Counted from the stretch's first letter, positions 6,891 to 32,380 are shown. The stretch is DNA of 64,000 bases from Podarcis bocagei (GCA_964188305.1 OZ076889.1); one strand, 5' to 3'. Translations and numbers: made by a program. Notes: generated from the sequence alone by a model not told the origin.

Positions 6891-7323
6891 ATGGAGTCCC
6901 AAGACGCAGCTGCTCAGTCTCTCCGGGCCCCCAAATGCTCACGCTGCCGGAACCACGGCTTTGTGGTACCCGTGAAGGGCCACGCAGGCCACTGCCGCTG
7001 GAAGCAGTGCCCATGTGAAAAATGTGCTCTCATTACTGAACGCCAGAAGATCATGGCTGCGCAGAAGGCCTTGAAGAGGCAGGGACCGGACTCGCCACTC
7101 AGGGAAATGTTGCCACCTGGTCAGCACAGTCCAAGCGATGAACAGGTGGCAACCACAGGTAGCGGCAGAAAGTGCTCCAGGCTGAATCTTTCAGAACCCC
7201 ACAACCAGGGGTCTGTTGTGCAGGAAGGAGCCAAGGGGACTTCTGCAGCAGTTGGCCACTCTGTGAGGACAAGGACTGCCAGGACACCACCCAAACCCAA
7301 CTCTCCAACTTTCATAGACTTAG
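6891..7323 (+). CDS. DMRTB1: DMRTB1 (DMRT6) coding exon 1, containing the DM zinc domain
   Basis: GCCATGG start at 6891. [51 protein letters not shown] is the DMRTB1-type DM domain (CSRC, KGHAG and [10 protein letters not shown] are diagnostic). Donor AG|GTATGT after 7323, phase 1. Confidence 0.95.
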
Positions 7324-7380
7324 GTATGTGGTCCAGCTCAAAGCTCTGCTTCAAACAGGCTGGTGTGTTGCTAGCCATTA

Positions 7381-7458
7381 TTTTAATGTATTTTTAATCT
7401 TTGTTGGAAGCTGCCCAGCCAGATGGGCGGGGTACAAATAAATAATAATAATAATAAT
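7381..7458 (+). mobile_element. L2-family LINE 3'-end fragment with (AAT)n tail, internally deleted
   Basis: ttggaagctgcccagccagatgggcggggtacaaataaat(aat)n matches the 3' end of the longer L2 copy at 55165-55598. Confidence 0.7.
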
Positions 7459-8428
7459 ATTTTTTTTTTATTTTTTTTTGCATATATGCACCAAATGTTC
7501 CACCTGCTCTGCCTCAAGAATTTCTGTTTTCTGTTGTGGGGATTTGGTACTGGTGCTATTTTGGGATTTCTTCTTCCCTGAAAAGATAGCATGGATTTAT
7601 TTATTTATTTATTTATTTTGCAGTTCCATATCCTGCTTGAGGACTTTGTAGCTGCAGGAATTTAGTCTTGGAGGCTGCTTGACCATGTTTCATTGTTGCA
7701 GAAAAGAAAGAAAAACCACCCCTCAAATCTATGCAGCCGGTCTTTGTTTTAAGAGTGAAATGAGCTTGCAGCAGGCCCTGCGCAGCACTGAATTGCCAAT
7801 AGAGCAACAAGACTAACCCAGAGTCTAGACTTAAAATGAAGTTTGTTGTATTTTACAGACATCTCCTTTAGCAAGGGGAATATATCACAGCCAGTGCAAA
7901 TAAACAGGGAAGTTACTGCCATTTGTTGGGACCGGGTGTGTAAAATATAAAAGAGAAAAGCAAACCTGGGATTTGACTGTCATCTTACGAAAAATTATTT
8001 TTGCAATGAAAGTGGTGCTCATATGTGGCTGCTTTTACAAATATCTAGAGCTGCAGTGAATTTTGGGAGGGAAAAATCAAGATCTAATTTTGCAAAATTA
8101 AATTTTATTTTACAATACTTAGATTTTTTTGGTCAGCATTCTCATTATTGAATTTAAGGGTTAAAGTAACAACATGGAGTTTAGAAAATGTTAAATCTAG
8201 CAAGTTGATAGCAATACTGCCTTAAATCAATAAGCCGTAAGTAAAACAAATTTATCAAAAACATATATGTTGCAAAATGTTGTATTTAAGCTCTGCAATT
8301 TTCCTCAGTTTTAACTTTTCAGAACATGTTGGTTCAGTTCTAAAAAATATGTGGTTAATATGACTTCAACATGCTCTCTAGCTGTTTCATTCTATTATCT
8401 CTATTTTGTGCTACCTTTAATTGTGGTT

Positions 8429-8441
8429 TGCCATCTACTGG
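8429..8441 (-). promoter_or_regulatory. Candidate CTCF site (DMRTB1 intron 1)
   Basis: The minus strand reads CCAGTAGATGGCA, matching the CTCF core CCASYAGRKGGCR. Motif match only. Confidence 0.4.
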
Positions 8442-9486
8442 TTTGTCAGTGTACTAAACACTATTAAAACAGCCTATATGTTACTCTTTTATTTAAACTT
8501 AGCATTAAATCTGTGAGCTTGTTTTCAAATGCATCAGGTTGTGTTTTGTTTTGTTTCGAAATACTGATAAATCTTCCAGCCACAAGTGCTGCAAATTCAG
8601 AGGCCCTGGTAGTGTTTAACTTTGCTTCAATACTACATGGTGTCTAGAATCTTTTAATCTGTGAGTAGGAATGGTGTCTCTGGACATTCTCCAGCTGGGT
8701 GGGAGCCATTTATCCACGAGTACCTCTACATAGCTGTAAAAACATTTAGATAACCCAGCCAGAGGCGTAACTGGGTCCCTTGCGCCCTTGTCAAGGAGCT
8801 GTATTGGTGGGACCACCCCCAGAAAAAAATCTGACTTTACCGTAATAGCCACATTAGAAATTGCTGCATTTTATGCTACCTAAGTACTTGAAGCGACCAG
8901 AGTTAGTGTGAGGATTGGAGGAAGGGTGAAAACATTTGCATGTCTTTGTTCTGTGGTGCAATAAGGATGGTAAGCTTGTTCCACTTTTGATCTCACCACG
9001 ACAGTGGTCTACCTTCATACCACCTTGCCATTTCTCCTACAGCTCAGCTCCCCACTCTTGTCTAAATTCACAACTTTACAGAGATAGCTGGAGAAAGATT
9101 TCTGGGGTGATTATTGCTTCTCCCTGGGCCTGCGCCTCGAGCGAAGGCCTGTTTCACCAGCCCCTAAGTACACCTCTGAACCCAGCTATGTAGGTACAAC
9201 CCAGTTGTAAGGTTCTTTCCCACAGACCTGGCAATTTGCCCCAGTGCAGTGAGAATTATGACCTTCTCCCCATGTTTTGGCAATTTAAGCATCCTAGCTG
9301 CATAGAACTGGTCCTGGATAATCATCTCATACAATCTCAATCATACAATGTTGGGAAGACATCTAAAAAGGACCTACTCATGAATATTCAAATAGTGGAA
9401 GCACAGCATTTTCAAGTTGCTAAAATACATGGAAATCTTATATTGTTTATAACACTATTCCGTTCAACTATTCTATTTCTCTGTAG

Positions 9487-9713
9487 ACCAGCCTCAAGAA
9501 TGTGCTGTTGTGGGCCCAGAATCTGTGGACAGGGAGACTCCAAAAGTGTATTCCGGGTACTCTGGGATGTACCCTTACCATCCATTTTCTGTTGGATTCG
9601 CTATCAACCAAACAGGCTACAGAGGCCCTTCACCTGCCTCTGTCTTGCCCCTGCAAGCAGGTTTCAGGCACTTTCCTAGCAGTCATGGGCCAGGAGGTGT
9701 TGCTTCTATGCCA
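9487..9713 (+). CDS. DMRTB1: DMRTB1 coding exon 2
   Basis: Acceptor ttctatttctctgtag| before 9487. Phase 1 gives DQPQECAVVGPESVDRETPKVYSGYSGMYPYHPFSVGF..., which resembles the DMRTB1 middle region. Donor CCA|GTAAGT after 9713, phase 0. Confidence 0.9.
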
Positions 9714-9792
9714 GTAAGTGACATTTTATCCATAGTACTGCTTAATGCAAGCTCTGCTTGAATGCAGGAGCTCAGGTCTTGAAATATCCTTA

Positions 9793-9795
<3 letters not shown>

Positions 9796-9840
<45 letters not shown>

Positions 9841-9852
9841 AAGAAAGAAAGA
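9796..9852. repeat. (GA)n followed by (GAAA)n microsatellite
   Basis: Directly visible. Confidence 0.95.
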
Positions 9853-10526
9853 AAACCCTTTGCCTCTGGTAGCATCAGTCTTGAATTGTATGTAGACAAA
9901 ACAAAAAAGGGGTAAATTTCAGGGTTATACAAAACTTGTCCCTTTAATTTTATTGAGTTTTCCACCTTTCCAACTCCTGGTCTTGAATATAGATAATATC
10001 TCTGGGAGTGTTTCAGATCGGCTACTATTAGGAACTGTACAAACTGGATGCACATTGGAATGAGCTTCCAGACAGGCAGCTCCTAGTGCCATCCATTCAT
10101 GGCTTTTCTGCTGTAAGCTACAATTGGAATTGACTTTCTACACTATTACTCTATGTATAGACCTGCTGTGTTCCATCCTTGTCACTGGATGTGAAACAGC
10201 TGATGTGGGTGGAAAAGAAGGTCCAAATCATGTGAGCAGCTACTGGAAGAGAAGCGTGCATTTGTTATACTGATAAAGCAGTCTATAAATTTTGTTAAAT
10301 GAAAAAATAAAGACAGCCTTTGTAGCTGGTGCCATTTTAGCAGCTTGCTTAGTTTTGAATCAATATTTAATGCCAGTGTGTATTTTATGGCTATCTGCTT
10401 TTAATCAAAGGGGTATTATAGTGGTAATAAAAACTAAAAATCCTCCCTGATCACTGCCATTAACCAAATTGCTAAAATGGTGTTGGCGACAAAGGGGTTT
10501 TTACTTCATAAAAAAAGTAAAGCCAG

Positions 10527-10577
10527 AAAATATCAATTAAAATATCAATTAAATATCAATTAAAAATATCAATTAAA
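10527..10577. repeat. Short tandem repeat, ~4 copies of aaatatcaatt
   Basis: Directly visible. Confidence 0.85.
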
Positions 10578-11893
10578 AAAAGCAGAGTAATAAAATTGTT
10601 TCCACCACAAAGGTAACAGCATATATATGTTGTGATAGATCAATGCCCACAGGAAAATATTGCTGTTCTAAAAAAATATTTAAGTACTGTACTTCTAAGT
10701 GCATCCACACCTGTGGAGATTGCGTTACTTGTTCTTCTGAAAAAGGTGCCTGGTTAGGCATCAGGATGCCTCATGGAAACTGATTAATCAATTGCATAAT
10801 AAAGTCAGACATTTCGGTGTATGTCTGTTCTTCTGAGGAAAGACAGTAGAACAGGAAAAATACAATGCAACAGCTGTGTAGCTGTCTTGTAAAGAGTAAG
10901 TGAACAAAACATGACTATCCCACACAAAATGCCAGGTGTGGAGTACCTTAAATGTGATTTAACCACTACTTTCAACAGATATGCGCATCTGAGTTCAGGT
11001 GTTCTCCTTTACTTTCAGTGGGGTACATATTTGGTTGTTCACTCAGAAATAATCCTCATTTTAAATACCCAGCTCCCAGTTGGCACAAAATATAGTGTAT
11101 CCATACACTGATAATTGTTTCTTCAAAGTGAAAGTAAATCGGACAGAATTTGACAGAAGGTGGTTTCAAGGTATCTACGCTAGGGGAACCCACATCAGAA
11201 ACTGAACCTGCTGGATAATTGAACTAATCATTCTCTTGGGGTTTTAGGGCCCTTTTCTTTTTTTTAGTACATATTGCAACTGGCTCCTGTTAGGGCCCAT
11301 GTACATGGAGAATTTTGCCCATGTTCACAGTTTTGCACTTGAATGGAAGCTCAGGACACCGTAAATGGAAATGGTATGGAAATGCAAAATGGGTTCCCAG
11401 TATGATGAAAACTGCCATAATTTCCTCAGTCAACCTGGAATAGGGTAGCTAGGTGCAAAAAGGGACAGGGCTCCTGTAATTTATCGGTAGCAGCTTGTAA
11501 TGCAAGCTACAGCTGTAGAATTTCCTTCTTCTGCACAACTATTAAAGCTGCAGGACCCTGGACATAAGTTCATAAGGAAAGCCAAAGGCCCATCTACTCC
11601 AGCATACTGTTCTTTCAGTGGCCAACCAGATGGAAGCCTGCAAGCAGGTCCTGAGTGCCACAACACTTTTCCCACATTTGGTTCCTAGCAAATGGTATTC
11701 AGAGGCATCCTATATTTGACACTGGAAGTAGAGCATAGCCACAATGACCTCTTTTGCTCCTGGTCAACCTACCCATAAATCTTCGTAAACAGTTCAGAAT
11801 TATATGATGATAAAACACATTTTGTCTTAGCCTTCTGTCCTTTTATGTATTCACACTGAAACCAAATACCTTTGTCTCTTTGCCTTCACGCAG

Positions 11894-12038
11894 ATGCAAG
11901 ATGTAGGTGGAGATTTTTGTCCAGGTTATTACACTCCATTGCCACCTTTCATACCTCAGGGATTTCTGCCAGGGATTCACTACATTCCGCCGCCTCTCCC
12001 ACTGAATGTTGTGGCTGAAGCTACAAAGGAAACATCTG
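11894..12038 (+). CDS. DMRTB1: DMRTB1 coding exon 3 (proline-rich)
   Basis: Acceptor tttgtctctttgccttcacgcag|. Phase 0 gives MQDVGGDFCPGYYTPLPPFIPQGFLPGIHYIPPPLPLNVVAEATKETS. Donor CTG|GTAAGC after 12038, phase 1. Confidence 0.9.
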
Positions 12039-12619
12039 GTAAGCATTCAGAAGGTTCCGTTAGTTGCATAGCAGGTGTGTTGTGGCTGTCCACCCAGACA
12101 GGAAGGGGATAAATAACAACTGAGACAAGTGTATGCGCCACAACTTTCACATGACTACAGTGAGGTAAGCATAGCATTAGGTTAGGATCCGTTATCCTGA
12201 AAGACTCCTGATATGGATGCCAATACGCCATCCCAGCATGCCTGTTGGGGAATCCCATGGAGGTTGGCTAGTGTGAAAGGACGCTATGTGACTAGTATCC
12301 TGCTGGTAACCTGATATGAATAGTGACAGGAGTGGACTGCCTGGGCCAGACCTGGTGGGAGGGTCCCAAATATGACAATGATTATATATTTATTTATAAT
12401 CTCCCTTTCTCCCTGACAAGGACTCAAGGAAGTTTACAGATAAGAACAGCTAAAAGCATAGAAGAAACTATCATTAAAAAGCAATTAAACAGCAATAGAA
12501 AAAAAAGACTTTGGCAATCCCACCTGCCACTGAACTCAGTGTGTTTTGATTATATGCAATTTTGGCTTTATGCACTATCCATTGGAATGTAACTCCTGCA
12601 TTAGTTGAGAGTCACCTGT

Positions 12620-12754
12620 ACTCTGTACTGACTGGCAGCTGTTCTCCAGGGTTTCAGGCAGGAATATTTCCGTTACCAAGAGACACTAGGCATTGAACCT
12701 ATAACCTTTTGCCCTGTGTGGGGTGTGTTTTACCACTGAGCTATAGCACTTCCC
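12620..12754 (-). mobile_element. tRNA-derived SINE (Squam-like), decayed
   Basis: The minus strand starts gggaagtgctatagctcagtggtaaaacac...aggttcaatgcctag, with pol III A-box-like and B-box-like segments. Confidence 0.6.
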
Positions 12755-13832
12755 TCTTTAGCATGGTCCTTCTTAAAATATTTAGCTCCTGTTTGCTTTT
12801 CATCTTGAATTGTGGTAATATAAATTAATAGCTGCTTTCATATTTGGTAAGGTCAAGGAAAAACCACACACACAAAAAACCCTTAAGTATTGTATTTACC
12901 TTTCTTGGTTTCATGCCTTTAGCCCAGTGTAGGGGAAAATCAAGCATACTATGGGCAACCTTTGGCTGGCTCACAGCCGTGATACAGAAACATTTTCCAC
13001 AGTTTCAAACAGAGTTAACTTTTCCCTTCAGAAGAACTACTTTTCCTGTTCTGCCACAAACATGGCTGATATAAACATGCTGAAATAACTCATGAAATAG
13101 CTCTTATTTGTATGTTCATGCCTACCTGTTGTTGTTTTCTAAAATCCTATGTATGAAAAGCTAGCACATCAAAGAAAAGGCTAGACTTGAAACTCTTTCC
13201 CTATACATGTGCTTTGTTTTTGATGCAGAGAATCACTCACAACTATCTGACCTAAATACATACTCTGAAGCACCACATACTGTTTTGTGTACATAATTAG
13301 GTTGCCTGAAAACTGAAAAATTGTTTGCTTCCTAGCAGCAGTTTGTCTCAAGCTGAGAAGGTATGTTTTGAAAAGCTGCTAACTTTCAACATGGGAACAA
13401 AGTTCATTTTGTAAAAGCACTATATGTGTATTCTCCTTTGCTTGCAAGATGCTTTTTTCTAATGGATCTAGCTGATAGTGCTGTCTGGCAGGTACACTTC
13501 TGCTAGTAGTGAAATGCTCCTTCAACCCTTGCTTTCATAAATATCTTTATCTGGTTTAGTCCTATGTGGATTTAGTTATACGTATCTTTAGCCAAATGGA
13601 TTTACAGAAAGTCAGGTATCATTGACGGACAGTTCTAAGTCATACTCATAGATGACCCAGACTAACAAATCCATTAATTTCAGTAATCTATTCAGGTTAT
13701 GAGTCAGATACCACCCCAGATTTTAAAGGAACAAAGCTAATCTTTCCATTCTTTTCTCACATTCTATGGCGTGAATGTGGGACGTGAAAATTATTTTTGG
13801 AGTTTTAAGTTCTGATGTTTAATTTTTGAGTA

Positions 13833-13846
13833 GCCACAAGAGGGCA
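13833..13846 (+). promoter_or_regulatory. Candidate CTCF site (DMRTB1 intron 3)
   Basis: GCCACAAGAGGGCA, one mismatch from the CTCF core consensus. Motif match only. Confidence 0.35.
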
Positions 13847-14193
13847 AACTACTTGGAAATTAATCTCAAACTCTAGAGTTGTCAATTTGGGGGGCGGTTG
13901 TTTGAAACCCTTAAGGATTTTATAGCATCTTTGTAGACTACATAAAGTAAGTTGTATATTTGCAGTAGTATTGGGGAGTTGACCTAATAAGCCACCATCT
14001 GCAAACTAGAAAGATACAAGCTATAATAACATGAGGTGATAAGCTTATTTGTATTTCAAATATTTGAATGATTCAAGATCAAAAATGGACATGAAATTAA
14101 AACAAACAGAGAATTCCTTGGATTAATTGTAAAGAGCAGATTCATACAAAGAACCTGAAATCACTGGATTGTTCTTCTGCTTCTGTATTTCAG

Positions 14194-14297
14194 CTACACC
14201 TGCAGATAGCCAGGATTCTGGAGTGATATCTGAACGCAGCCTGCCATCTTCTCAGGAAGATGCCAGTGGAAAATGTTCCTCATATTCTGAGCACTAA
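14194..14297 (+). CDS. DMRTB1: DMRTB1 coding exon 4 (terminal)
   Basis: Acceptor ttcttctgcttctgtatttcag|. Phase 1 gives ATPADSQDSGVISERSLPSSQEDASGKCSSYSEH*, resembling the DMRTB1 C-terminal PSSQE region. TAA at 14295-14297. Spliced CDS 433+227+145+104 = 909 nt = 302 aa. Confidence 0.85.
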
Positions 14298-15140
14298 ATG
14301 CACCAAAAAGTCATGTTCAAATGTTGACTTCAAGTGGTGCCATTCTGAAAGTGATGTTTTGTTTTGCGTCACTGACTGGTCACGTCAGTATTTGGGTTGG
14401 TATTGTTCACAACATTTGGTCTATCAGGTGCTATCCACACAGGAATTTCCGCTGCTTGGTGCCTTAGCGCCAAAGTGGAAGTTTAGGAATCTTCATAGTC
14501 GGTTTCTGACATGCAGATGGGCAGGAAGTTAATGCTGGCTCAACTCAGGATTAATGTAAACTGTAGGAGATCAGATGTGCTCAAGTACATGCGATCCCTA
14601 AGTAAAGTTGTGCCTTGTCATACTTTCACACCACCTCCCAGCCTGTGGTTGTGAAAGTGGATATTCTAGCCATTTCTAGGCTTGCCAGCTTTTGTTATCT
14701 GCTTCTGTCTGGGCCTTCAACAAGAGTTTGCTATGTAGATATTAGCAGGCGATAATGATTATCTCCATTGTTTGAAAAGTTTGATTTACTAATTCTTCCA
14801 TTTCAGGCTGGTATTAAAACCCCAGAATCAGGCTAATTCTTTTTCTGACAAGTTGGAGCCCTAACTTACGCTTGTGCTGCAGCTGTGTATTTCTTTCAAA
14901 GTTCAGGAGAGGAACTATAGAGGGATGGCTCAGACACTTTTTATGCTTCAGTGGGTATTAGAGCTGCAATACACATAATGGGAAGAACCTTCTCCCTAAA
15001 CAGAAATGTTTATAGGGAAATAACTCTTGAGTTTCAAGGGCCTGCTAATGATAACAGACCATGAATAGAGTTGTGGTTCATATGGCTGAACAGTTGGGAT
15101 AAATTTGGGATAGTAGAGTTACAGTTACCACTATGATTAA

Positions 15141-15463
15141 GGCCCCATCTGCACTATACATTTAAAGCAGCGTCATACCACCCTAGACAGTCAGGGCCTT
15201 CCCCAAAGAATCCTGGGAACTGGTCTTTTTGTTTATGATGCTGTGAGGGATTAGGAGATCCCTGTTCTCCTCCCAGAGCTACAATTCCCAGAGTTCTCAG
15301 GGAAGAGAGGTTGGGTGTTAAACCACTCTGAGAAGTGTTACTCTGAGAGGAGAACAGGGGTCCCCTAGCAACTCTAAGCACCCTTAACAAACAAGTTCCC
15401 AGGATTCTTTGGGGGAAGCTCTGACTGCTTCAAGGTCTTTAAATATACAGTGCAGGCAGGGTC
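15141..15463. mobile_element. Palindromic MITE, probably PIF/Harbinger-derived
   Basis: Imperfect TIRs ggccccatctgcactatacatttaaag / ctttaaatatacagtgcaggcagggtc, with TAA on both sides and internal inverted repeats (ccaaagaatcctgggaac / gttcccaggattctttgg). Confidence 0.7.
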
Positions 15464-16538
15464 TAAGTGTAGCTCTTCATGCTCAGTGTTTGAATTGTGT
15501 CATTTATATAACTGTTTCATGTTAATTATGGCTTAGTCCAAAACCAGAGACAAGAACTGGGGAAGAGCAAGGCAAATGTGCACTTGATGACTCTCTGCTT
15601 ACTCAGCCTTTACTTTGGGGGAAAAGAGCACAGTTCTTACCTGATAGGAAAGGAGGAAGATTTATTTTTGTAATAAATCAGAATAAGGATGAAGAACAGC
15701 ATTCCGCTTTAATGTGTTCCGTTGTAAAAAGACCAGCTACAAATGTTAGTTTCACTTTCTTTGCTTAAATCTATTAAACATTGATACTGACCTTAAGTTT
15801 TGAAATGTCACATTTTTGTTCTGAAACAGACTTCAAATGTTTAAAAGGCGGAGGGGACATTAACAAGGATATTTTTATCTGAATACAATTACTGCTACAG
15901 TTGTTGAAGAATTAATGGAAAATTCAAACGTATACCTACTTGGCTTACCTAATGAGCAGCAATAGAAGGATTAATTAAAACTTCCTATTTCAAGTGACCG
16001 AACAACATCCAGAGTCAAAGGCATTTTAGTCAGGATGCGTTTTGCCATATCACTGTATGGCTGAAATCACTCTTTATTATCACAAATGAGCCAGGATGAA
16101 CAAATTATTGTGGCCTAGTGCACTAGGTCAAAATCCACCATGTAAGAAATTCTTGTGTACAAACTCAACCAAAATGAGAGCTGTGCAAGACTACTTGTGT
16201 GAGCATGTGTTACAACTACTTAGGTGAACATGTGTTACAACTTGGGAGTATTATCTTTTAGTATTTTAGTTCTGAATCAAACACTATATTTAAAAGGTGA
16301 CCCTGAATTTGAAATTCATAACACTGAAGACAAACAGCAGTTGGATCAAGAGATCATGGATCATTGCTTTGCAATGATGTATGGGGTTCTGCTTGTTTTT
16401 GTAGTGCTACAGATGTAAGCTTTTGAATTTTCTGGCTTTCAGGTCAATAGTCTATATTCTAAATAACTATAGTGTATTTAAATATAAAATAATGTTTCTT
16501 TTTTTTGTGGATCCATGAGAGTGGACTTTTGTGATGTA

Positions 16539-16764
16539 CAGTGGTACCTCGGGTTACATATGCTTCAGGTTACAGACTCCGCTAACCCAGAAATAGTACC
16601 TCGGGTTAAGAACTTTGCTTCAGGATGAGAACAGAAATCGGGCTCTGGCGGTGCGGCGGCAGCAGGAGGCCCCATTAGCTAAAGTGGTGCTTTAGGTTAA
16701 GAACAGTTTCAGATTAAGAACAGACCTCCGGAACGAATTAAGTACTTAACCCAAGGTATCACTG
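16539..16764. mobile_element. Tc1/mariner-type MITE, family A copy 1
   Basis: TIRs CAGTGGTACCTCGGGTTA / TAACCCAAGGTATCACTG, TA target duplication, 226 bp. Four further near-identical copies lie in this window. Confidence 0.9.
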
Positions 16765-17044
16765 TATAAGAAAGTATGAGAGAGAGAAGCCAATTGTCAT
16801 AAGTATGGCAAACTATTCTTTTACCTAGTCTTGTAGTTATTGGTGCAACAAGAGCCCCAAATCCTGAAATTTATTGTTCATTTCATCAGTTCGCTAGTGA
16901 AGGAGGTGAGCTACACTAGGAGATTGTAATTGTAGATTAAAATGTTAGTTTATCGTACCAATTAATAGGACTATCACCCTTTTAAATAAATCTTAGTCAA
17001 TTAAACATGTTAGTTTTAATCATTTAAATGATTAAATATGTATA

Positions 17045-17103
17045 CATAGAATCATAGAATCATAGAGTTGGAAGAGACCACAAGGGCCATCGAGTCCAAC
17101 CCC
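17045..17103 (-). mobile_element. CR1 LINE extreme 3' end (~59 bp)
   Basis: catagaatcatagaatcatagagttggaagagaccacaagggccatcgagtccaacccc, essentially identical to the 3' end of the CR1 at 3341. Confidence 0.88.
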
Positions 17104-17678
17104 TGTACATCTGTATTTGAATGAGAGAGCATTGAGGAAAAAGTATACATAGTTTGTGGTTCTAGACTCAAAACTGCACCTAGATGCTCAGATATCAGTG
17201 GTGGCTAGGACTGCTTTTTACCAACTTTGAGTTACACGCCAAAAGTCATTTCTTGTTAATTTGAGATTGGATTACAGTACTGCAGCATGTTCTACATGGA
17301 GCCGTCATTAAATAATGCCCAAAAGATTCCATTAGTTCCACATGCAACTGCCAGCTGTATCACATTATGCCAATCCTTTACTAGCTTCGCTGGTTTGTGA
17401 TTTGCTTCCAGCCATGATTCAAGGTGCTAGTTTTGATGTTTAAAATGCTAAATGACTAAGTCTCAAGACTGTGAGCCACTGAAGAAAGTTCAGTAAAAAC
17501 TCTCATTTCAGTGGAGTTTTTCAGGACCATTTCCTAACTATTTACAAAAATTATTTTTAAAAAATCTGCTGTTGCAGTCTCCCATTATTATTTTTCTTAC
17601 TGGCTGGGGGAGGAGTTGCATCTGTTTTTGTGCTTTTCTGCTGTAAACTGTCATGAGTATCTTGCCAGAAAGGTAATG

Positions 17679-17732
17679 AAGAAAGCCACCCAGAGTGGCT
17701 GGGGAGGCCCAGCCAGATGGGCGGGGTATAAA

Positions 17733-17787
<55 letters not shown>
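17679..17787 (+). mobile_element. L2-family 3'-end fragment with (ATT)n tail
   Basis: aagccacccagagtggctggggaggcccagccagatgggcggggtataaat followed by ~18 ATT units; same family as 55165-55598. Confidence 0.8.
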
Positions 17788-17789
<2 letters not shown>

Positions 17790-17974
17790 ACATAATAAAC
17801 ACATCACCCTAGTCCTTGCTCACTGGTAGGCATAATTTTGAATTAGCGTCCTCACTTACTGTGCCTCGCAAGGCTGACAGTCCAGGTACTTCTCATAATG
17901 AATCTGGGGTGTGCATCCGATTCTTGGCAATAACTGATGATGTAGGACTCGAAAATGGGTCGATACGTGTGTGT

Positions 17975-18373
17975 GTTTAGTGGGGCGGGAAGGACGGCAA
18001 AACGGAGCCTTGTGTCCTGTAGCATTTTAGGGGTTAAGCCTGGAATAGATTTGATTGAGCGGAAAGTGGTGGGGAGAGTGGAGAACTGACGTCAAAGATC
18101 AAGTCTGGGCCGGGCTGAGCCTTCATCGGAAAGGTGCTACTAATACGCAGGACAGAAGAAGACACGGCTGTAGAGGAGAGCCGACGGGAAGCAGCCGCAG
18201 ACTCGGCCAGAGGGCTCTACAGTCCCAACAAGTTGCAAATGCGACGAGGCTTTGCTGCCGTCTAGCAAAGTGAAGCCCAACCTGTGCAGGTGCCTTCAGG
18301 CCCACCAAAAAAAAAAAAAAAAAAAAAAAGCTACAGTTTCAGAAGGCCTGAGACAGCGAGCAAGAGGTCCGTC
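17975..18373 (+). promoter_or_regulatory. Putative DMRT2b promoter/5' UTR with GC box and perfect CRE
   Basis: GGGGCGGG at ~17982-17989, TGACGTCA at 18087-18094, and CpG density rising towards the ATG at 18374. An A23 tract lies at 18307-18329. Confidence 0.5.
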
Positions 18374-18800
18374 ATGTTGCCCTTGCCCTCCAGGCGGCAA
18401 CGAAAAGCTAAGTCTGCCCGCCCCGTCAATTCTTCGGAGCTCCCCGGCCATGAGAGCGAGGGCGGCTGCGGCGCTTTCAGCACCGGCTCGCGGCGCCTGC
18501 AGAGCCAGCGACTGCCCAAGTGCGCGCGCTGCAGGAACCACGGCGTGGTGTCCAGCCTCAAGGGCCACAAGCGGCTGTGCCGCTGGCGGGAGTGCGCGTG
18601 CGCCGCGTGCTTGCTGGTGCTCGAGAGGCAGCGCGTGACGGCCGCGCAGGTGGCGCTGAGGAGGCACCAAGACCAGGTGGCCGGCCAGGTGAGTGGGCGC
18701 GCGCGCCTTGCGCGGGGGAAAAACCAGCAGGGGCGGGAAACACAACGGCGGCCGCAGAGCGAGGGCCAGCAGGGCCCCTCTCTTCATGCTGACGGCTCTG
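18350..18800. promoter_or_regulatory. CpG island over DMRT2b exon 1
   Basis: Very GC- and CpG-rich (gcgcgcg, cggcgtgg etc.) within an otherwise AT-rich, CpG-depleted window. Confidence 0.8.
18374..18688 (+). CDS. DMRT2B: DMRT2-family gene (DMRT2b) coding exon 1, containing the DM domain
   Basis: [52 protein letters not shown] is a DMRT2-type DM domain (HGVVS, CRWR, CLLV). First in-frame ATG at 18374. Consensus donor CAG|GTGAGT after 18688, phase 0. Confidence 0.92.
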
Positions 18801-18816
18801 GAGTCCTTAAGAGGCC

Positions 18817-18973
18817 ATAACATAATAATAATGGTGATGATGATGACAGTTAATAATTTTATTGTTTATACCCCGCCCATCTGGCTGGGTTTCCCCAGCC
18901 GCTCTGGGCGGCTTCCAACAAAATATAAAAATAATAATAATAAAATGTCAGACATTAAAAACTTACCTGAACA
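18817..18973 (-). mobile_element. L2-family 3'-end fragment
   Basis: tttataccccgcccatctggctgggtttccccagccgctctgggcggcttcca is near-identical to 55212-55264. Confidence 0.85.
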
Positions 18974-19454
18974 AGTTGCTTCAGCACTGAGTTGTATTAA
19001 TTTCGGTAGTGGAGCAGCAGAACGGTTAGTAATGACTAAAGAAATCCTCTCAGGCAGCAGCGGGGGGGGGGGGATGGCGGAAACGCCTCAGGGCATGTGA
19101 TGTGGGGGCCCCTCAGAGGGCCACACTTGCCAGTATAGGCAACTCTGGCAAGTTGAATAGTTGCTGTTTAAACCAAGAATGTACTAGTCCCTGTATAAGC
19201 AGGACCACCCCCCAGGCATACCCCCACCATGCCTTTATTCCTTGCAATGCAGGAGCATCTTCAGCTGTGAAGTTTTTTCCCTGTAGCAAAGCACAAAGCT
19301 TCAGCTGCTGAATTTGCTCCAGTAAGTTCAGCTGGCTTTAGTTTTAGCTTCATTAGTGTGTGCCCTGGGCAGTGGGATGGGCTTTTTGCTTAGCTTCTGG
19401 GCCTATGCAAGCTTTATAGGGCAGTAAGCTTTTCCAGAACAAAAAATAAAGCAT

Positions 19455-19664
19455 CTGCATCAGGAAGACCTTTCTGGCAGTAAGTGGTGTTAGACATTGG
19501 AATGGACTCCTTGGGAAGGTGGTGGACTCCTCTCCTTTGGAGGTTTTTAGGCAGAGGTTGGATGGTCAACTGTCATGGACGCTTTGGTTGCAATTCCTGC
19601 ACTGCATGGGTTTGGACTAAATGACCCTTGAGGTCCCTTCCAACTCTACAGTTCTATGATTCTA
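19455..19664 (+). mobile_element. CR1 LINE 3' fragment (older subfamily)
   Basis: ggtggtggactcctctcctttggaggtttttaggcagaggttggatgg...gacccttgaggtcccttccaactctacagttctatgattcta is a typical CR1 3' end. Confidence 0.85.
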
Positions 19665-20219
19665 AGTGATACAAGAACAAACGGGGATGATGTGGAGCTG
19701 AGGAATAATGTAAGGAAAGTAACCTTAAAACTGCCCTCTCCTGAAGCACCTTTTCCTGAGAAAGTCACTGGAATCTGGTTCTACGTTTCAGCTAAAAACA
19801 AGTCCCAGTCTTTAATGAGTTTTGCCTCATGTAGATCGAAGCTGAGTAGCTTTAACTTTTAAATGGGATGGATTCAGTGTAAATAGTTTAAGCTTCTTAA
19901 ATTAATTTGTGTGCTAGTGGAGCTGTCTGGTCCTGGCACCGTAATTGGTTTACTGCTATTGAAGACAAGTTCCCTTTCTTTGAGTTCATGTTATGTTATA
20001 TGTATTTAAAACAGCAATAATAAACCCCTAATGTAAACTATATAATTGTAAAGCATCCTGGGGAAAAGTTGTCTTTTGATCATAATGCAGCTTTTCTTAT
20101 TTGCTTCCAAATAGCTTGAATGTTTTCAGTATTATTTTAGCAGGCAAGCATGGACATTGTTAGTAAGCAAAAATAGCTATGGTGCTGAGGAATGTCCTCT
20201 TCTTTTTGTGATTGCATAG

Positions 20220-20328
20220 GTTAAGAAAGGAATGAGGGGCAGTGAATGTTCAGTTTCTGGCCACAGATCAAACTTCCATTGCAAGACCAAGCAGACTGCC
20301 AGGTTGTTGGCTAGACACTCACCGGAAG
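20220..20328 (+). CDS. DMRT2B: DMRT2b coding exon 2
   Basis: Acceptor cctcttctttttgtgattgcatag|. Phase 0 gives VKKGMRGSECSVSGHRSNFHCKTKQTARLLARHSPE, corresponding to the short DMRT2 exon (DKKGLSG...LLAKSILEG). Donor AAG|GTATGT after 20328, phase 1. Confidence 0.85.
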
Positions 20329-21034
20329 GTATGTGCCTGCATGTAGGAAATACACTTGAAACAAACCTAGTAGGTTCTTCCCATTTAATGTATTCCATTA
20401 TAAAATGTGGTATTGATATAGGACAATAAGTTGTTATAGCTGTGAAATGAATGTTTATTTTATATTCCTGACACATTCCTTAAATAAGCATCTACTTATG
20501 AAGACCTCTTTAGGCATGACTCTCCAAACCCTTAAAAAGCATCAAAAGATTGTGTGACAATGGCATTTCTAGTCAAGGACTCTGGTTGATATTACATTTC
20601 ATGAGTGAATACTAGATGCATTCCAGAGAAGCTAAGTATACCTAAGTGCAACTGATTTGAGTATGAACTGAGTGTTCTTGATTTTCTTGGTGTCAGCTGT
20701 ATTTAAGCACAAAGGCTGCTTCAGATGTCTTAATTACATATGATATTACCTACACATGAAATACACTGGTGTAGTTAGCTGTTAGCTGTTGTATGTGACA
20801 AGCGTATGGGTACACTTTCACTATGCTACACTTTCAACTATACAACGTGTACAAACTGTTTATGGCTGGCACGTGCAACTATTACCTGTGATGTGACAAC
20901 TTACACACAGGTTTCTTAGTAATACCGTTTTTACCGCATGAAAAGCTTTCTGTAAAGGAAATGTGTAATGTTTGAAAGCACCTAATGCCAGGCTTTGCAC
21001 AATAACTGTCCTTTTCCTTTGGATCTCGTTGTAG

Positions 21035-21777
21035 CAAATAGTCCACCCTCCCAGGAAACAGAACATTGCCTTTCTAGCCTCAGTGAGAGAATGAGGAAAA
21101 GAAGGGCATTTGCAGACAAGGAGTTGGAATCAATAATGCTGGAAAGGGAACTTCGACAAAGAACCTTTGATGGATTTGCTGCCCATCAGAGAAGACAGCT
21201 GCTGAGCAGAGAGCATTTACCAGCCCTTGAGGAAAACGTATTCCAAAGTGGACATGATTACCTTAATTACTTGACATGCGTTAACTCTGGTATGTTGAAT
21301 ATTTGTTTTCCTTTGCTGCATTCAAATACCAAGGTTCTAGACTATGGACCTTGCATTTATAAAATCACAGACACTTCTCCTTTGAATGTAGCTTTTATCA
21401 CAGCAAGCCAAACTGAAGGTGGCACTTCACAGAAACGTACCTGTGAGGAGAGCATGAATAAATACCTAAATGTGTACAGAGAAAATAATTGTGACTGGAA
21501 GGAGCAAGCTCTGTCCAGTGTCTTTTCCAGAGATCTTCTCTTACTTGAGAATAATTGGAGCCCCAAAATAATAAAACTCCAAGAAAATAAAGAATTAAGA
21601 AACATGGCAGCCAGATACTGTATTTTGTGCAATCATCACTCAAAACAAGAAAATCACAATGTTAATGATACAGGTCTTGAAGTCAAGGAGGATGTAAGGC
21701 ATTTATCTCAAGAGTGTTGCTCAGAAATAAACAAGCAGATACTGTCTTTTTCAGTAGAATCTTTATTAAAAGTTTAA
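21035..21777 (+). CDS. DMRT2B: DMRT2b coding exon 3 (terminal)
   Basis: Acceptor cttttcctttggatctcgttgtag|, phase 1 compatible. Contains the DMRT2-specific motif LSERMRKRRAFADKELESIMLERE and the C-terminal LSFSVESLLK. TAA at 21775-21777. Spliced CDS 315+109+743 = 1167 nt = 388 aa. Confidence 0.92.
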
Positions 21778-21841
21778 ATCTATTAAGTAGCTTGGATGGC
21801 CAGTATTCTTATGAAATATTAATAAGGAAGTCTCCCTACTA

Positions 21842-21847
21842 AATAAA
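21842..21847 (+). terminator. Candidate polyadenylation signal of DMRT2b
   Basis: AATAAA 65 nt after the stop, followed by GT/T-rich sequence (tattgtatgtat). Confidence 0.45.
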
Positions 21848-22652
21848 TATTCATATTGTATGTATAACTTTAACTCTTCTGCAAGTAATTAACATCATTG
21901 ACTCCTGTTCCATTTCTGATGTAGGGGGAAAACGTTCTACTTTGTTGTGATACATTGGAACTAGATCAGTGTGTTCTGGTAAGAGTGAGGATTTGCATCT
22001 TTATTTTCATGAATGTTTATGTTTGTAAATGTGTTCAACTGGGCTTTTTTTCATCCATCTTGTTTTGCTTATAAGTAAAACATTATTTGCCTGTATGAAG
22101 CTGCAAAATATTACCAGGCATATGGCTTCCAGTATATTATAAAATACAGTGTAACTATTTGCAGAGGAAAAACCAGGTGAAAAAATATTACAACATAGCA
22201 TAATGTCATAACATAACTTTTTGTTTTGATCAAATTACTGGAAGTAACTGTGATACAAATCACCAATTTTTGTGCCTAAAGTCCCTGAAAGTCCCTGCAA
22301 CTGCAGCTTCTTTCAAACAGGATCTGAAAATCTAGTTTTATCCTTTGCTGAAGCAGGGTAATTGGTAACCAGCATTGCCATTTGATTAGCCATATCATTC
22401 GGATTATGACATGCTCCAAGCAGAGAGGCTACCACTGCTATAAAAAAGAAAAACATGCACCCAAACTGACAAAAAAATAATCTGGGACGAGGACAGGTCA
22501 CCACCACCACTGTCATGGAGAAGAGGGTCAGCAGAAACAGAAGGGGAAATTAAAGAACTAGGGTGTGTGCAGTGTGATCTGTCCCCTACCTTTTAAGGGT
22601 GGCCATGCCCACTGTTGTTTCTGGTCAAGAAGGTTTTACAGATTTTGTACTA

Positions 22653-22878
22653 CAGTGGTACCTCAGGTTAAGTACTTAATTTGTTCCGGAGGTCCATTCT
22701 TAACCTGAAACTGTTCTTAACCTGAAGCACCACTTTAGCTAATGGGGCCTCCCGCTGCTGCTGCACCGCCAGAGCACGATTTCTGTTCTCATCCTGAAGC
22801 AAAGTTCTTAACTTGAAGCACTATTTCTGGGTTAGCGGAGTCTGTAACCTGAAGCGTATGTAACCCGAGGTATCACTT
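22653..22878. mobile_element. Tc1/mariner-type MITE, family A copy 2 (inverted relative to copy 1)
   Basis: TA-CAGTGGTACCTCAGGTTA...TAACCCGAGGTATCACTT-TA. Confidence 0.9.
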
Positions 22879-24824
22879 TATTTGGAAAACCTGCAGAATC
22901 TGTTTATCAGAAGTGGTGGTAGAAGAAGTGCACATTCTATGAGCAACTGCCCTCCTTTAAAGTTTATTCAATTCTGAGGATGCAATCCTAAGCACACTTA
23001 CTAGGGAGTTGGATTCATGAGCAAAATGGAGAATACAGCCAAGCAGACATGCAAAGATAGGATTTGCACTATGAAAATCCTCTCATCCACCACCACACAA
23101 AATAGTATGTGTATGGAATTGAACTTTACTGCTTTTCGCTGGAAATATATTGGACACTATTACTAAGGGCACAAGCCTAGACAGTGTGTCTGGAAGTCCT
23201 GGGCTGCCCAGGCAACAGGAATTCCGCACTACTTTGATGATAGATTCTTGGCACCCTTATTACAAATAATGAAATAGTGCAATACACTTCAATTCTACTA
23301 TCTAAAACAATAGGCAAGGAAAGTTAAAGTTCTCAAGATATGCATTACAGTTCTCAAGATACACATTACCTTTTTCTACAAAATACAAATATTGCTGGAG
23401 CCAATATTTCATTCTATACACAAAAGAAATTAAAGCACTAATTGCCAATTAATTTAAATACTAAGGAAACACATATTTCAAGCTTTGGGGGGCCAGTTTA
23501 ACATCTCTAGGTCTTGCTTTTAGTCCCAAATAATATGCCCCAAATAATAATTTGCCTTAATGAAGCAAGTGTATGTTCTTTTAGCAACAATTTCCTTTAA
23601 AGATAGTATATTGGTTCATTTATAGCGTATATATTTTCCCAGCTCTTGGTCTCCATTGAGCTCTTGCCTGAAGGAGAGCTTTGTAAATCATGGAAACATT
23701 CATAGCAACTGAAATGGTTAAAGTTATTTCCCTACATATTGAGTCATATCACAGAATTAATTTGCCCAACAAGAATTCATGCAGCTAGCTTATATAAACA
23801 CAGGTTTTGTTTTTAAAAGATTGGGTTGCTTCATTTGTGAAAAGGTCCAAATGCTCTCAGCTACCAAGACAAGTTATTCTCTGCACATTGCAGTCAGGCT
23901 CTTTTTAAAGGAAATGACCAAAGCCTGCTCTTTCCACTTTCCTTTGCTTCCTGCAGGCTTCATGATATGCCTCTTATGGGCTGCCCTCTGCTAGTGAAGA
24001 AACAGTAGGGAATGACTGAGATGATTGGCTTATTTTTGTTGCCTCTTGCTCCTTCACAACCTGAAACTAAGTAAAGCCTCAATAAGGAAGGGCTTTTAAT
24101 TGACCCAAGCATTATTTTGATGGAGGGCTATCCCACAGTAGTCCATAAAGTTGATTTGGGTCTTCCAGTAAATTGGGTCAGCACACATTGGAAAATTTTC
24201 TGATACAAGTAAGGAACAAGAGAGTGTAGACACTTAAGTACAACTTGTGTCACTCGAGGTGTGAGTTGCTTCCATGGAATGGCATGCTTTTTGTAAGCTT
24301 AAGGTGATGCACCACATGCAACTCTACTTGGAATATTAATAGTTTGACTTCACTTATCTATGCTCTGGACTGGTAACATTCAGGTTAGATTACCTGTGTG
24401 TTGCTGGTTCTCTGATTGGGAATTTGATATACAGTTTGTTCTGGATAGGTTCGTTCTCCTCTTGAAAGAGTGAGCTCATGGACTTGGGGCTCTCCTTGAT
24501 CCAGTGCTGTCCTTGATGGTCCTGGTGGCAAGGAGTTCCTATTACTAGTTTGTCAGTGATGGCCTTTCCTGGTTAGGTAGCCTTGCCATAGCAATGCATG
24601 CTATGGTAACTTCCCAGTTGAATTATTGTAAAGTGCTTTTTGGGCTGCGTATGGTTTAAAAACTGTAGCTGATGTAATTCTGAGGATGTTGAGAAGTACT
24701 GGCGGTTGGAACCACATAACAACATTTGTCCTTCAGAATCTGCAGCACTCAATGCAATGTGTTGATGTATAAAAAATGATCAGACCTAAATACCTCTTTC
24801 TATACAAGTCTGCCTGGAGAGTGA

Positions 24825-26522: not shown

Positions 26523-27609
26523 AGGAGTAGGAGTAGTACTAATAGTTAAACTCTGATATGGGGAATTTCTGGATATTGTTAGATTTCACCTTGGCCGCAG
26601 TCAGCATGGATTGGCTAATTGTCAGGGGTGATTTGAGTTGTAGTCCAACAACATCTGAAAGGCCATAGATTCCCCATCCCAGGTCTACATAGTGACTCAT
26701 TTTTACCACTATTCTCTGTTACCCAGCTCCATCTTTGCAGAGCTGTATGCCCCTGTTTTTGATGCTATGTCAGAATAGATGTGAGAACAAACACACATTT
26801 CTGCACCTGGCAAAAGAGACACGGACATGCCAACATAGTCGGGGAGGGGGGAACCTTTGTGGCCCATCTGGTCAGATTGTTAATCTGTCTCCACCAGAGG
26901 TGTATCTAGGCTCCCTTGCGCCCTTGGCAAGGAGAGTGGGCAGATAAGCTCCTAGCCACTCTGAGCCAGAGTGGAGAGGCATGATTTTTGTGGGGCCCAC
27001 CCGGCCTGTGCCCTTGGTCCCCAACCTAATCACCCCTTGATCCCACCCCCACGAGCTAGCTTTTACAGTAACTTTTGAACTACTGAAGGAAAAAATGAGT
27101 TGTAATTCAGTAGGTGAAAGCTTCCAGCAACACAGCAGAATCCAAATAGCCTTGAAAAATCAACAAGTGTTTCCTTAATCTTTGCCCCTCTGATGGATTT
27201 CCACCATCCTCAGCAATTAATTAACTAACGGTGCAATCCAATACGTGACTTAGTAAGCCCCATTGATTCATTGGAAATTACTCCCAGGTAAGTATGCATA
27301 GGACTGCAGCCTAAATATTTAATGAACCTATTTAAAGCTTGAAACCCTAGTTACAACTTCCCAACCACTTTTCCAGAAGTTATGCCAGAGCACTTTTGAG
27401 TATGTACTTTTATATTGCAGTACTCTGACTGCACACTTCAAGCTGTTAACTGGGGAATGGCAGAACAAACTTCCTTAATCTCCCATTACTTTCCCTTAAA
27501 ATAATAATACAAAGAATGTTTTAATGTACAGGGCTGCTAAAAAGTGATAAAATTTCAGTGAAGGTACCAGTGATTTAGGTGATCCATGTAGACTCAACAT
27601 CTAATAGCA

Positions 27610-31525: not shown

Positions 31526-32380
31526 TCTTCTTCTTCTTCTTTGGTGATCACTCGTAGCTGAGTAAGATTGTCTTCCATAAACACGGTTTTAACAATGAGT
31601 TCATAAGTGACTATATAAAAAAATTCCTTCCAGTAGCACCTTAAAGACCAACTAAGTTAGTTCTTGGTATGAGCTTTCGTGTGCATTCATAAGTGACTGT
31701 GGAGGCCAATTCTGGATCCACATGTCCTTCCACAGTGGGGACATTGATTTCCGGGCAGGAGTTTATCACGGTGTGGATTTGTCAAGCTGTGCCTTTCTCT
31801 TAGCACATTTCTCCCTTGTATCCTGAGTTTGAGTGTCTTCAAAGCCCATGACACCTTTGCTAAAGGCTGTTCTCCAATTCGAGCGCTCGCAGGCCAGTGT
31901 TTCCCAATTGTTGGTGTTTATACTACATTTTTAAAGATTTGCCTTGAGACAGTCTTTATTAAACCTCTTTTGTTGACTACCAGCATCACGCTTTCCATTT
32001 TTAAGTTTGGAATAGAGTAGTTGCTTTGGAAGACGATAATCAGGCATCCACACAACATGACCAGTCCAACGAAGTTGATGTTGAAGAATCATTGCTTCAA
32101 CACTGGTGATCTTTGCTTCTTCCAGTACACTGTTATTAGTTTGCCTGTCTTCCCAAGTGATGTGTACATTTTTTCGGAGATACCGTTGATGGAATCTTTC
32201 GAGGAGTTGGCGTTTATAAGTGGTCCATGTTTCACAAGCATACAGTAAGGTTGGTAGTATAACAGCTTTGTAAACAAGCATTTTGGTTTCCCTGCGAATG
32301 TCCTGGTCCTCAAACACTCTGCACTTCAATCGGGAGAAAGCCACACTCGCAGAGCTCAGGCGATGCTGGATTTTGGCATC
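31526..32380 (-). mobile_element. RTE-clade LINE 3' fragment with (AAG)n tail
   Basis: ORF 31931-32440 reads IQHRLSSASVAFSRL...TKMLVYKAVILPTLLYACETWT...QLRWTGHVVWMPDYRLPKQLLY, the RTE ORF C-terminus. Tail appears as tcttcttcttcttct at ~31526-31540. Confidence 0.92.
31613..31685 (-). mobile_element. Penelope-like element terminal fragment nested in the RTE
   Basis: ttccagtagcaccttaaagaccaactaag...ggtatgagctttcgtgtgca, flanked by a 13-bp direct duplication ttcataagtgact (31600-31612 and 31686-31698). The family call is by recognition of squamate Penelope termini. Confidence 0.7.

Follow-up and report, generated by a model that had tools for sequence, protein, structure and literature searches.

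Why does a lizard carry a second DM-domain gene directly behind DMRTB1? We examined this question in a stretch of 64,000 nucleotides from Podarcis bocagei (GCA_964188305.1, OZ076889.1), called the window below, a 64-kb sequence without runs of N. Two DM-domain genes lie on its plus strand: gene 1, which is DMRTB1 (DMRT6), and gene 2, which resembles DMRT2. In papers from 2019 to 2025, tetrapods are described as having no dmrt2b or just one dmrt2; the wording "dmrt2b being unique to fish" is found in PMC7689362, and the claim of a fish-specific gene is repeated in PMC12570769 and bioRxiv 10.1101/2025.06.11.659201. Our results point elsewhere. We consider it highly probable that the lizard locus is an ancient dmrt6(DMRTB1)-dmrt2b tandem in which both genes are intact, and that gene 2 is the tetrapod orthologue of dmrt2b, held by ancestral inheritance.

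The initial annotation had described two complete DM-domain genes in the same orientation and about 4 kb apart, the second encoding a spliced protein of 388 amino acids with junctions at 18688/20220 and 20328/21035. Both statements hold. The stop of gene 1 is at 14297 and the ATG of gene 2 is at 18374, both on the plus strand and separated by 4,076 bp, while the model of gene 2 was matched to the base with GT-AG at all intron borders. Its coding sequence of 1167 nt (18374-21777, stop codon 21775-21777) contains zero internal stops, and its exon lengths of 315, 109 and 743 nt are identical to those of the annotated P. raffonei gene. The parts of gene 2, which is called dmrt2b from here on, are as follows.

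18374-18688, plus strand: dmrt2b coding exon 1 with the ATG and the DM domain, 315 nt; donor GTGAGT.
20220-20328, plus strand: dmrt2b coding exon 2, 109 nt; acceptor ...TTGCATAG, donor GTATGT.
21035-21777, plus strand: dmrt2b coding exon 3 with the RMRKRRAFADKELE motif, the C-terminal FSVESLLKV and the stop codon, 743 nt; acceptor ...GTTGTAG.

The DM domain of the gene 2 protein matches Pfam PF00751 at 79.1 bits (E 2.3e-22; the curated cut-off is 27 bits) over profile positions 1-47 of 47, and the protein aligns to the human DMRT1-DNA structure 4YJ0 with E 1.4e-23. The intertwined CCHC/HCCC zinc-ligand pattern C-x2-C-x2-H-x8-H-x3-C-x4-C-x-C-x2-C, with its eight ligands, is complete in both proteins of the window. 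Membership of the DMRT2 subfamily is indicated by the post-DM motif LSERMRKRRAFADKELE and by FSVES near the C-terminus. The RMRKRRAFADKELE and FSVESLL motifs named in the initial annotation are indeed carried by exon 3, but they are common to DMRT2a and DMRT2b, so that they mark the subfamily and not 2b. Over its full length, exon 3 can be aligned with turtle, crocodile, coelacanth, lungfish, shark and gar proteins. The residues L, S, R, M, R, K, R, R, F, A, D, K, E, L and E are invariant in 15 aligned sequences, and most of them also in 26.

Gene 1 consists of four coding exons (6891-14297, plus strand) and encodes 302 amino acids; the product annotated at the corresponding position in P. raffonei is equally long. 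Its exons were derived by enumeration of splice consensus and reading frame, followed by a blastn check of the exons; a tblastx comparison of Podarcis with Rhineura was useless for this purpose because non-coding DNA is conserved between them too.

6891-7323, plus strand: DMRTB1 coding exon 1 with the ATG and the DM domain; donor AG|GTATGT at 7323/7324, zinc ligands intact.
9487-9713, plus strand: DMRTB1 coding exon 2; acceptor ...TCTCTGTAG, donor GTAAGT, frame kept.
11894-12038, plus strand: DMRTB1 coding exon 3, the proline-rich part; acceptor ...TTCACGCAG, donor GTAAGC.
14194-14297, plus strand: DMRTB1 coding exon 4 with the stop codon; acceptor ...GTATTTCAG, its end matching the annotated end of the P. 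raffonei gene.
14298-18373, no strand: intergenic spacer from the DMRTB1 stop to the dmrt2b ATG, 4,076 bp.

The DM domain of gene 1 scores 78.5 bits (E 3.3e-22) against PF00751. Exon 2 is conserved in P. raffonei (98%), Lerista (81%) and Caretta (73%), exon 3 in these three and emu, and exon 4 in P. raffonei, Rhineura, Alligator, Caretta and emu; no frame-breaking gaps occur in exons 2-4 in P. raffonei. Because its best matches are all annotated as DMRTB1 (P. muralis, Naja, Varanus, Salvator, turtles, Crocodylus, birds and mammals), gene 1 is identified from its sequence as DMRTB1.

The arrangement of DMRTB1 or dmrt6 first and a DMRT2-like gene next, on the same strand, was found in the window, P. 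raffonei, Rhineura, Caretta, Alligator and the spotted gar. In these comparisons the window begins 6.9 kb upstream of DMRTB1, and the loci of the relatives reach 10 kb on each side. The chromosomes with the locus in relatives measure 96-102 Mb, a size that may hint at an autosome. The five relatives are listed below.

P. raffonei, same strand: a 302-aa gene ends 3.8 kb before the dmrt2b ATG.
Rhineura, same strand: a 301-aa gene ends 5.3 kb before dmrt2b.
Alligator, same strand: a 303-aa gene ends 9.5 kb before dmrt2b.
Caretta: DMRTB1 and dmrt2b on one strand of OZ220770.1, 19.3 kb from start to start.
Spotted gar, same strand: a 384-aa DM gene ends 4.0 kb before the gene that NCBI names dmrt2b.

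The DM domain of the upstream gar gene matches only the DMRTB1 DM exon in the window (56% identity), and Mawaribuchi et al. (2019, PMC6737965) have reported a dmrt6-dmrt2b cluster from spotted gar and coelacanth. A layout of three coding exons, the middle one 103-112 nt long, is shared by the window, P. raffonei, Rhineura, Emydura, Caretta, Alligator, gar and whale shark. In Emydura and whale shark there is no called gene within 10 kb upstream of the dmrt2b-like gene, and tblastx shows no DM exon there; the Lerista locus is N from 16886, 2.7 kb past DMRTB1, to its end. In our reading of these gene orders, synteny settles the orthology of gene 2 to dmrt2b.

We then compared the protein of gene 2 with its relatives. 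Identity is 97.4% to P. muralis, 96.6% to P. raffonei, 91.8% to Lacerta agilis and 75% to Rhineura. NCBI lists the P. muralis, P. raffonei and Lacerta proteins as "DMRT2-like" or "uncharacterized LOC", and the identities by themselves indicate a Podarcis species as the source of the window. A search with exon 3 returned lacertids and Rhineura (76%), then crocodilians and eight turtle clusters (37-41%), then sharks, lungfish and the dmrt2b of many fish. The full-length search added a coelacanth protein (P0079), which over its DM domain and the residues after it agrees with the sequence given as "L. chalumnae DMRT2b" in the supplement of PMC6737965. A profile of the post-DM part of the alignment was also searched against 1.84 billion cluster representatives, all of them predicted proteins. 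Full-length tetrapod matches fell into just three clusters at 50% identity (turtles, crocodilians and a lacertid/amphisbaenian cluster), and no amphibian, bird, mammal or other squamate cluster was found among these predicted proteins; the remaining matches share just the short RMRKRR block.

Maximum likelihood trees were inferred with IQ-TREE under LG+C20, from 48 proteins (tree 1) and from 42 proteins with a hemichordate DMRT2-like outgroup (tree 2). In tree 1 the reptile genes form one clade (100/100) and bony-vertebrate DMRT2a another (100/100) with a long stem, and the group of sharks plus DMRT2a is split from the remainder at 96/98. In tree 2 the DMRT2a clade is supported at 95/98, and the 2b side reads ray-finned 2b, (coelacanth, (lungfish, (squamates, (crocodilians, turtles)))), with supports of 76/74, 80/71 and 100/100, which mirrors the species tree. 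When the reptile genes were forced together with tetrapod DMRT2a, the likelihood was 137.6 log-likelihood (lnL) units worse and the approximately unbiased (AU) test rejected this placement (p 3e-8), so that gene 2 lies outside amniote DMRT2a. Placing all 2b-like genes in one clade was 0.05 lnL units worse (p 0.39) and is compatible with the data. Because of these AU tests we regard a recent origin of gene 2 from DMRT2a as excluded by the protein alignment, and membership of the 2b lineage as the best-fitting placement, although the tree by itself does not prove it strongly. The sandfly dmrtA2 branch was too long as an outgroup (3.1-3.75), and the hemichordate DMRT2-like protein was better. The root is uncertain and was not relied on, since the outgroup joins the tree on the long stem of DMRT2a, which is probably an effect of long-branch attraction. 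Emydura has both dmrt2b (P0007) and DMRT2 (P0107), and a gecko has a DMRT2a-type protein (P0317). The initial annotation had proposed that gene 2 is a retained ancient paralogue, DMRT2b, and this is supported by its grouping with coelacanth, lungfish and ray-finned 2b, by the rejected DMRT2a nesting and by the synteny with gar.

The "uncharacterized" DMRT2-like proteins of sharks and rays (P0015, P0081-P0085 and P0303) form an observation apart. They end in FSVESLLKT and are colinear with the 2b type, yet they group with DMRT2a (96/98); they also resemble the C. milii (elephant-shark) DMRT2a of PMC6737965, and the shark genes were not counted as 2b. The hemichordate DMRT2-like protein (P0343) is likewise colinear with the post-DM profile. 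This suggests that the short 2b-like architecture may be ancestral and the DMRT2a of bony vertebrates derived.

In emu, tblastn revealed an unannotated relic of exon 3 at 26582-27234 of the extracted locus (L010, from CM072395.1), which lies 9.3 kb downstream of DMRTB1 and shares its strand. It is 60% identical to Alligator (E about 8e-46) and carries in-frame stops at L010:26690 and L010:26741, a frameshift near 26848 and RMRKQR instead of RMRKRR. Neither a DM exon nor a middle exon is detectable in the 9.3 kb between DMRTB1 and the relic, and the locus stops inside the relic, whose 3' end lies beyond the sequence. Judged by these disruptions, dmrt2b has decayed to a pseudogene in at least one bird, and the relic shows that the tandem was already present in the archosaur ancestor. 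The relic also demonstrates that an unconstrained copy visibly decays, which makes the intact frames in lizards, turtles and crocodilians meaningful.

Intact frames and splice sites of dmrt2b were found in the window, P. raffonei and Rhineura, and full-length models of 388-391 amino acids exist in P. muralis and Lacerta agilis. The ratio of nonsynonymous to synonymous substitution rates (dN/dS) against Rhineura, calculated pairwise by NG86 at a synonymous divergence (dS) of 0.30, is 0.47 (bootstrap range 0.34-0.70); the DM domain taken separately gives 0.075, the middle part 0.42 and the C-terminal part 0.65. Among turtles and Alligator the ratio is 0.38-0.43, so the moderate constraint appears to be a trait of the gene and not of lizards. 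These values indicate that the coding sequence of dmrt2b is under purifying selection. The 5' end of the gene also stands out in base composition.

17751-19000, no strand: CpG island over the 5' end of dmrt2b, with GC content 0.47-0.65 and CpG observed/expected 0.77-0.92.

Elsewhere CpG observed/expected is 0.05-0.35, including the 5' end of DMRTB1, which has no CpG island.

Several findings weigh against the reading of gene 2 as a working dmrt2b of ancient descent. Among predicted proteins the gene was found in no squamate family beyond lacertids and the amphisbaenian. The branch joining all bony-vertebrate 2b-like genes is moderate, with 73/46 in tree 2, and tree 1 does not resolve it; placing the reptile genes as sister to all bony-vertebrate DMRT2a is borderline, with AU p values of 0.051 and 0.044. 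The squamate stem branch is long (0.84-1.0 substitutions per site), a dN/dS of about 0.5-0.65 outside the DM domain is high, and the AKSILEGYKPP motif, which is kept from sharks and coelacanth to turtles, is degraded in squamates. Zero reads fell on the three dmrt2b exons in three bulk RNA runs and one single-cell run from a congener (of unknown tissue, with about 12-26% of each run read), a result that we treat as uninformative rather than negative. The annotated models in relatives have no untranslated regions (UTRs) and so do not show transcription. Zebrafish in which dmrt2b is knocked out survive and are fertile, which means that the gene is not always needed (bioRxiv 10.1101/2022.08.28.505603).

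One alternative is that gene 2 is not an ancient dmrt2b at all and arose as a reptile- or amniote-specific duplicate of DMRT2(a) that landed beside DMRTB1. The NCBI name "DMRT2-like", the RMRKRRAFADKELE and FSVES motifs common with DMRT2a and the poorly resolved base of the 2b group agree with such an origin. It must however bear the cost of 137.6 lnL units (AU p 3e-8), and it has to explain why the C-terminal half is colinear with coelacanth DMRT2b, lungfish and gar when DMRT2a matches just the first 40-50%, why the protein ends in FSVESLLK as 2b does when DMRT2a runs on with ...ILKRPS..., and why the gar gene has the identical position, strand and spacing downstream of dmrt6. We regard this origin as largely refuted and very improbable. 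Still less credit is due to the idea that the tandem is an artefact of assembly or annotation, for example a collapsed or chimeric join of distant DM genes: we found no supporting point, the window is free of N runs, the same layout recurs in independent chromosome-scale assemblies (P. raffonei, Rhineura, Caretta, Alligator and gar), and 56-80% of the words sampled from the window recur in DNA runs of several related organisms. Such an artefact is next to inconceivable.

A more serious alternative accepts the orthology and doubts the function: gene 2 might be a dmrt2b that is silent or decaying in lizards, with a frame left open by luck or by a very recent loss, and with models that are artefacts of ab initio prediction. 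It can point to the zero exon reads in the four RNA runs, to the dN/dS of 0.65 in the C-terminal part, the degraded SILEGYKPP and the long squamate branch, as well as to the loss of dmrt2b in birds and to annotated models without UTRs. Set against it are a frame of 388-391 amino acids and splice sites that are intact in the window, P. raffonei and Rhineura, together with the full-length models of P. muralis and Lacerta agilis. At a dS of 0.30 to Rhineura the dN/dS is 0.075 in the DM domain and 0.47 over the whole gene with a bootstrap upper bound of 0.70, and the emu relic illustrates what neutral decay produces, with its stops, its frameshift and the DM exon gone. At loci that are silenced and methylated, CpG islands are normally eroded, yet CpG observed/expected is 0.77-0.92 at the 5' end of dmrt2b. 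A silent or decaying copy is thus unlikely in our judgement, and gene 2 is probably a functional tetrapod dmrt2b.

For the origin of the pair we propose that dmrt2b would be the sister paralogue of DMRT2(a), derived from the early vertebrate genome duplications, and that the dmrt6-dmrt2b pair would have been inherited from the bony-vertebrate ancestor and kept in lacertids, the amphisbaenian, turtles and crocodilians. The product of gene 2 is expected to act as a DMRT2-type, sequence-specific transcription factor and to contact DNA in the manner of DMRT1 in 4YJ0. An AlphaFold model built with 26 homologues has a mean predicted local distance difference test (pLDDT) score of 44 and is confident only at the DM recognition helix (77-106) and at a helix at 159-198 that surrounds the invariant LSERMRKRRAFADKELE block; the remainder is predicted to be disordered. 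Outside the DM domain and the LSERMRKRRAFADKELE helix, the protein would therefore seem to be largely disordered and fast-evolving.

As for its role, reptile dmrt2b may act in embryonic somite and muscle formation and in left-right patterning, on the analogy of DMRT2 and of dmrt2b in zebrafish. Morphants for the zebrafish gene show defects of somites, slow muscle and left-right patterning via Hedgehog signalling (PMC2749440), and mutant fish survive, are fertile and have normal sex ratios (bioRxiv 10.1101/2022.08.28.505603). Because of the morphant defects and of the fertile mutants with normal sex ratios, a role in embryonic mesoderm seems more likely than one in sex or the germ line. A bolder proposal is that reptile dmrt2b and the germ-cell gene DMRTB1 work as a two-gene unit in the development of the gonad or germ line; as dmrt2b is retained by turtles and crocodilians, this might include temperature-sensitive sex differentiation. 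We hold this to be a long shot. If it were true, the lineages that lost dmrt2b, birds and presumably mammals, would be those in which the DMRT network was rewired.

Two further features belong to the 3' end of dmrt2b.

21842-21847, plus strand: AATAAA signal, 65 nt past the dmrt2b stop; a pattern match only.
21925-21950, plus strand: possible alternative last coding exon of a 234-aa isoform X2, placed by tblastn; splice context G|GTATGT ... TGATGTAG|, with the donor after 21289.

Isoform X2 of 234 amino acids is annotated by NCBI in P. muralis and P. raffonei, and a 234-aa model also exists in P. lilfordi. In this form exon 3 is left at the donor 21289/21290 for a tiny last exon encoding GGKRSTLL and a stop, which removes the C-terminal half including FSVESLL. 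It is known from annotation only, with zero supporting reads in the four congener RNA runs.

The window also contains copies of an interspersed repeat that resembles a short interspersed nuclear element (SINE), at 7383-7592, 17557-17800, 18858-18950, 19610-19664 and 22650-22880, some of them beside (AAT)n microsatellites; one copy with its microsatellite stands directly upstream of the dmrt2b CpG island. These SINE-like repeats draw hundreds of RNA reads with many mismatches from all four runs, and the copies at 18858-18950, 19610-19664 and 22650-22880 are the sole covered places in 17850-23700. On the other side of DMRTB1, head-to-head with it, an intact intronless open reading frame (ORF) occupies 863-2374 on the minus strand; it has three Mito_carr repeats (Pfam E 6.5e-46) and is SLC25A3-like, SLC25A3 being the mitochondrial phosphate carrier. 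The skink Lerista has an annotated intronless Mito_carr gene of 452 amino acids in the same position and orientation, with 82% amino acid identity over 353 residues, and no such ORF was found within 10 kb upstream of DMRTB1 in Caretta, emu and gar. This distribution fits a retrogene that predates the split of skinks and lacertids. At 31931-32440 on the minus strand, an ORF of 169 amino acids resembles the C-terminal part of the reverse transcriptase of a long interspersed nuclear element (LINE), with no Pfam match at E 0.01. Between 22 and 64 kb of the window no C2H2 zinc-finger exon (GLIS1 was sought) and no other gene that could be recognised was found, and long ORFs there gave no Pfam match.

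No report of a reptile dmrt2b was found in the searchable open-access literature, subscription journals lying outside this search. The gene models themselves were already known under uninformative names at NCBI; the orthology of gene 2, the conserved tandem and the bird relic are new. The step is modest, as it adds a new family member and corrects the label "fish-specific" and does not describe a new kind of thing. It does mean that the DMRT gene count of reptiles differs from the assumption of the literature, that dmrt2b changes from "fish-specific" to "lost several times in tetrapods" and becomes a clean case for the loss and retention of a developmental transcription factor, and that an unstudied DM-domain gene joins the candidates in work on reptile development and sex differentiation.

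When the pair is compared with known DMRT genes, gene 1 is not unusual relative to other squamate DMRTB1; in line with amniote DMRTB1 (DMRT6) in general, its four coding exons encode a DM domain and a C-terminal part rich in proline. Gene 2 was compared with DMRT2/DMRT2a (terra, the last gene of the DMRT1-DMRT3-DMRT2 cluster). Both belong to the same subfamily, their DM domains are very similar, and both carry RMRKRRAFADKELE and FSVES. However, the DMRT2a proteins of our sample have about 430 to 590 amino acids (most 470-540) and run on past FSVES (...ILKRPS...), whereas gene 2 ends in FSVESLLK, and DMRT2a differs from it in genomic neighbourhood and makes up a clade of its own. The DM core of DMRT2a is nearly unchanged from hemichordate to birds, with one substitution each in caecilian and hemichordate, while five changes in the core are common to all reptile 2b proteins (S/G, L, A, A and LVL), including LVV to LVL in the recognition helix, which in the lizard protein reads LVLERQRVT. 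Because of these shared changes, the DNA-binding preference of reptile 2b may differ from that of DMRT2a.

The closest counterparts of the lizard gene are the dmrt2b of ray-finned fish (zebrafish; gar P0068) and the coelacanth DMRT2b (P0079), with which it has in common the DM domain, the LSERMRKRRAFADKELE motif and the FSVESLL[KR]x end. The gar gene also has three coding exons and, as in the lizard, follows dmrt6 on the same strand at a distance of about 4 kb. The lizard gene differs from its fish and coelacanth counterparts in its long squamate branch, its degraded SILEGYKPP and an identity of only 25-35% outside the conserved blocks. Most teleosts do not have the tandem, since dmrt6 was mostly lost in them (PMC7689362). 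The dmrt6-dmrt2b cluster of gar and coelacanth (PMC6737965) has the same two genes in the same order and on the same strand as the lizard pair, and although that study reports no dmrt2b in tetrapod genome databases, the gene is found here in lizards, an amphisbaenian, turtles and crocodilians, and as a relic in emu.

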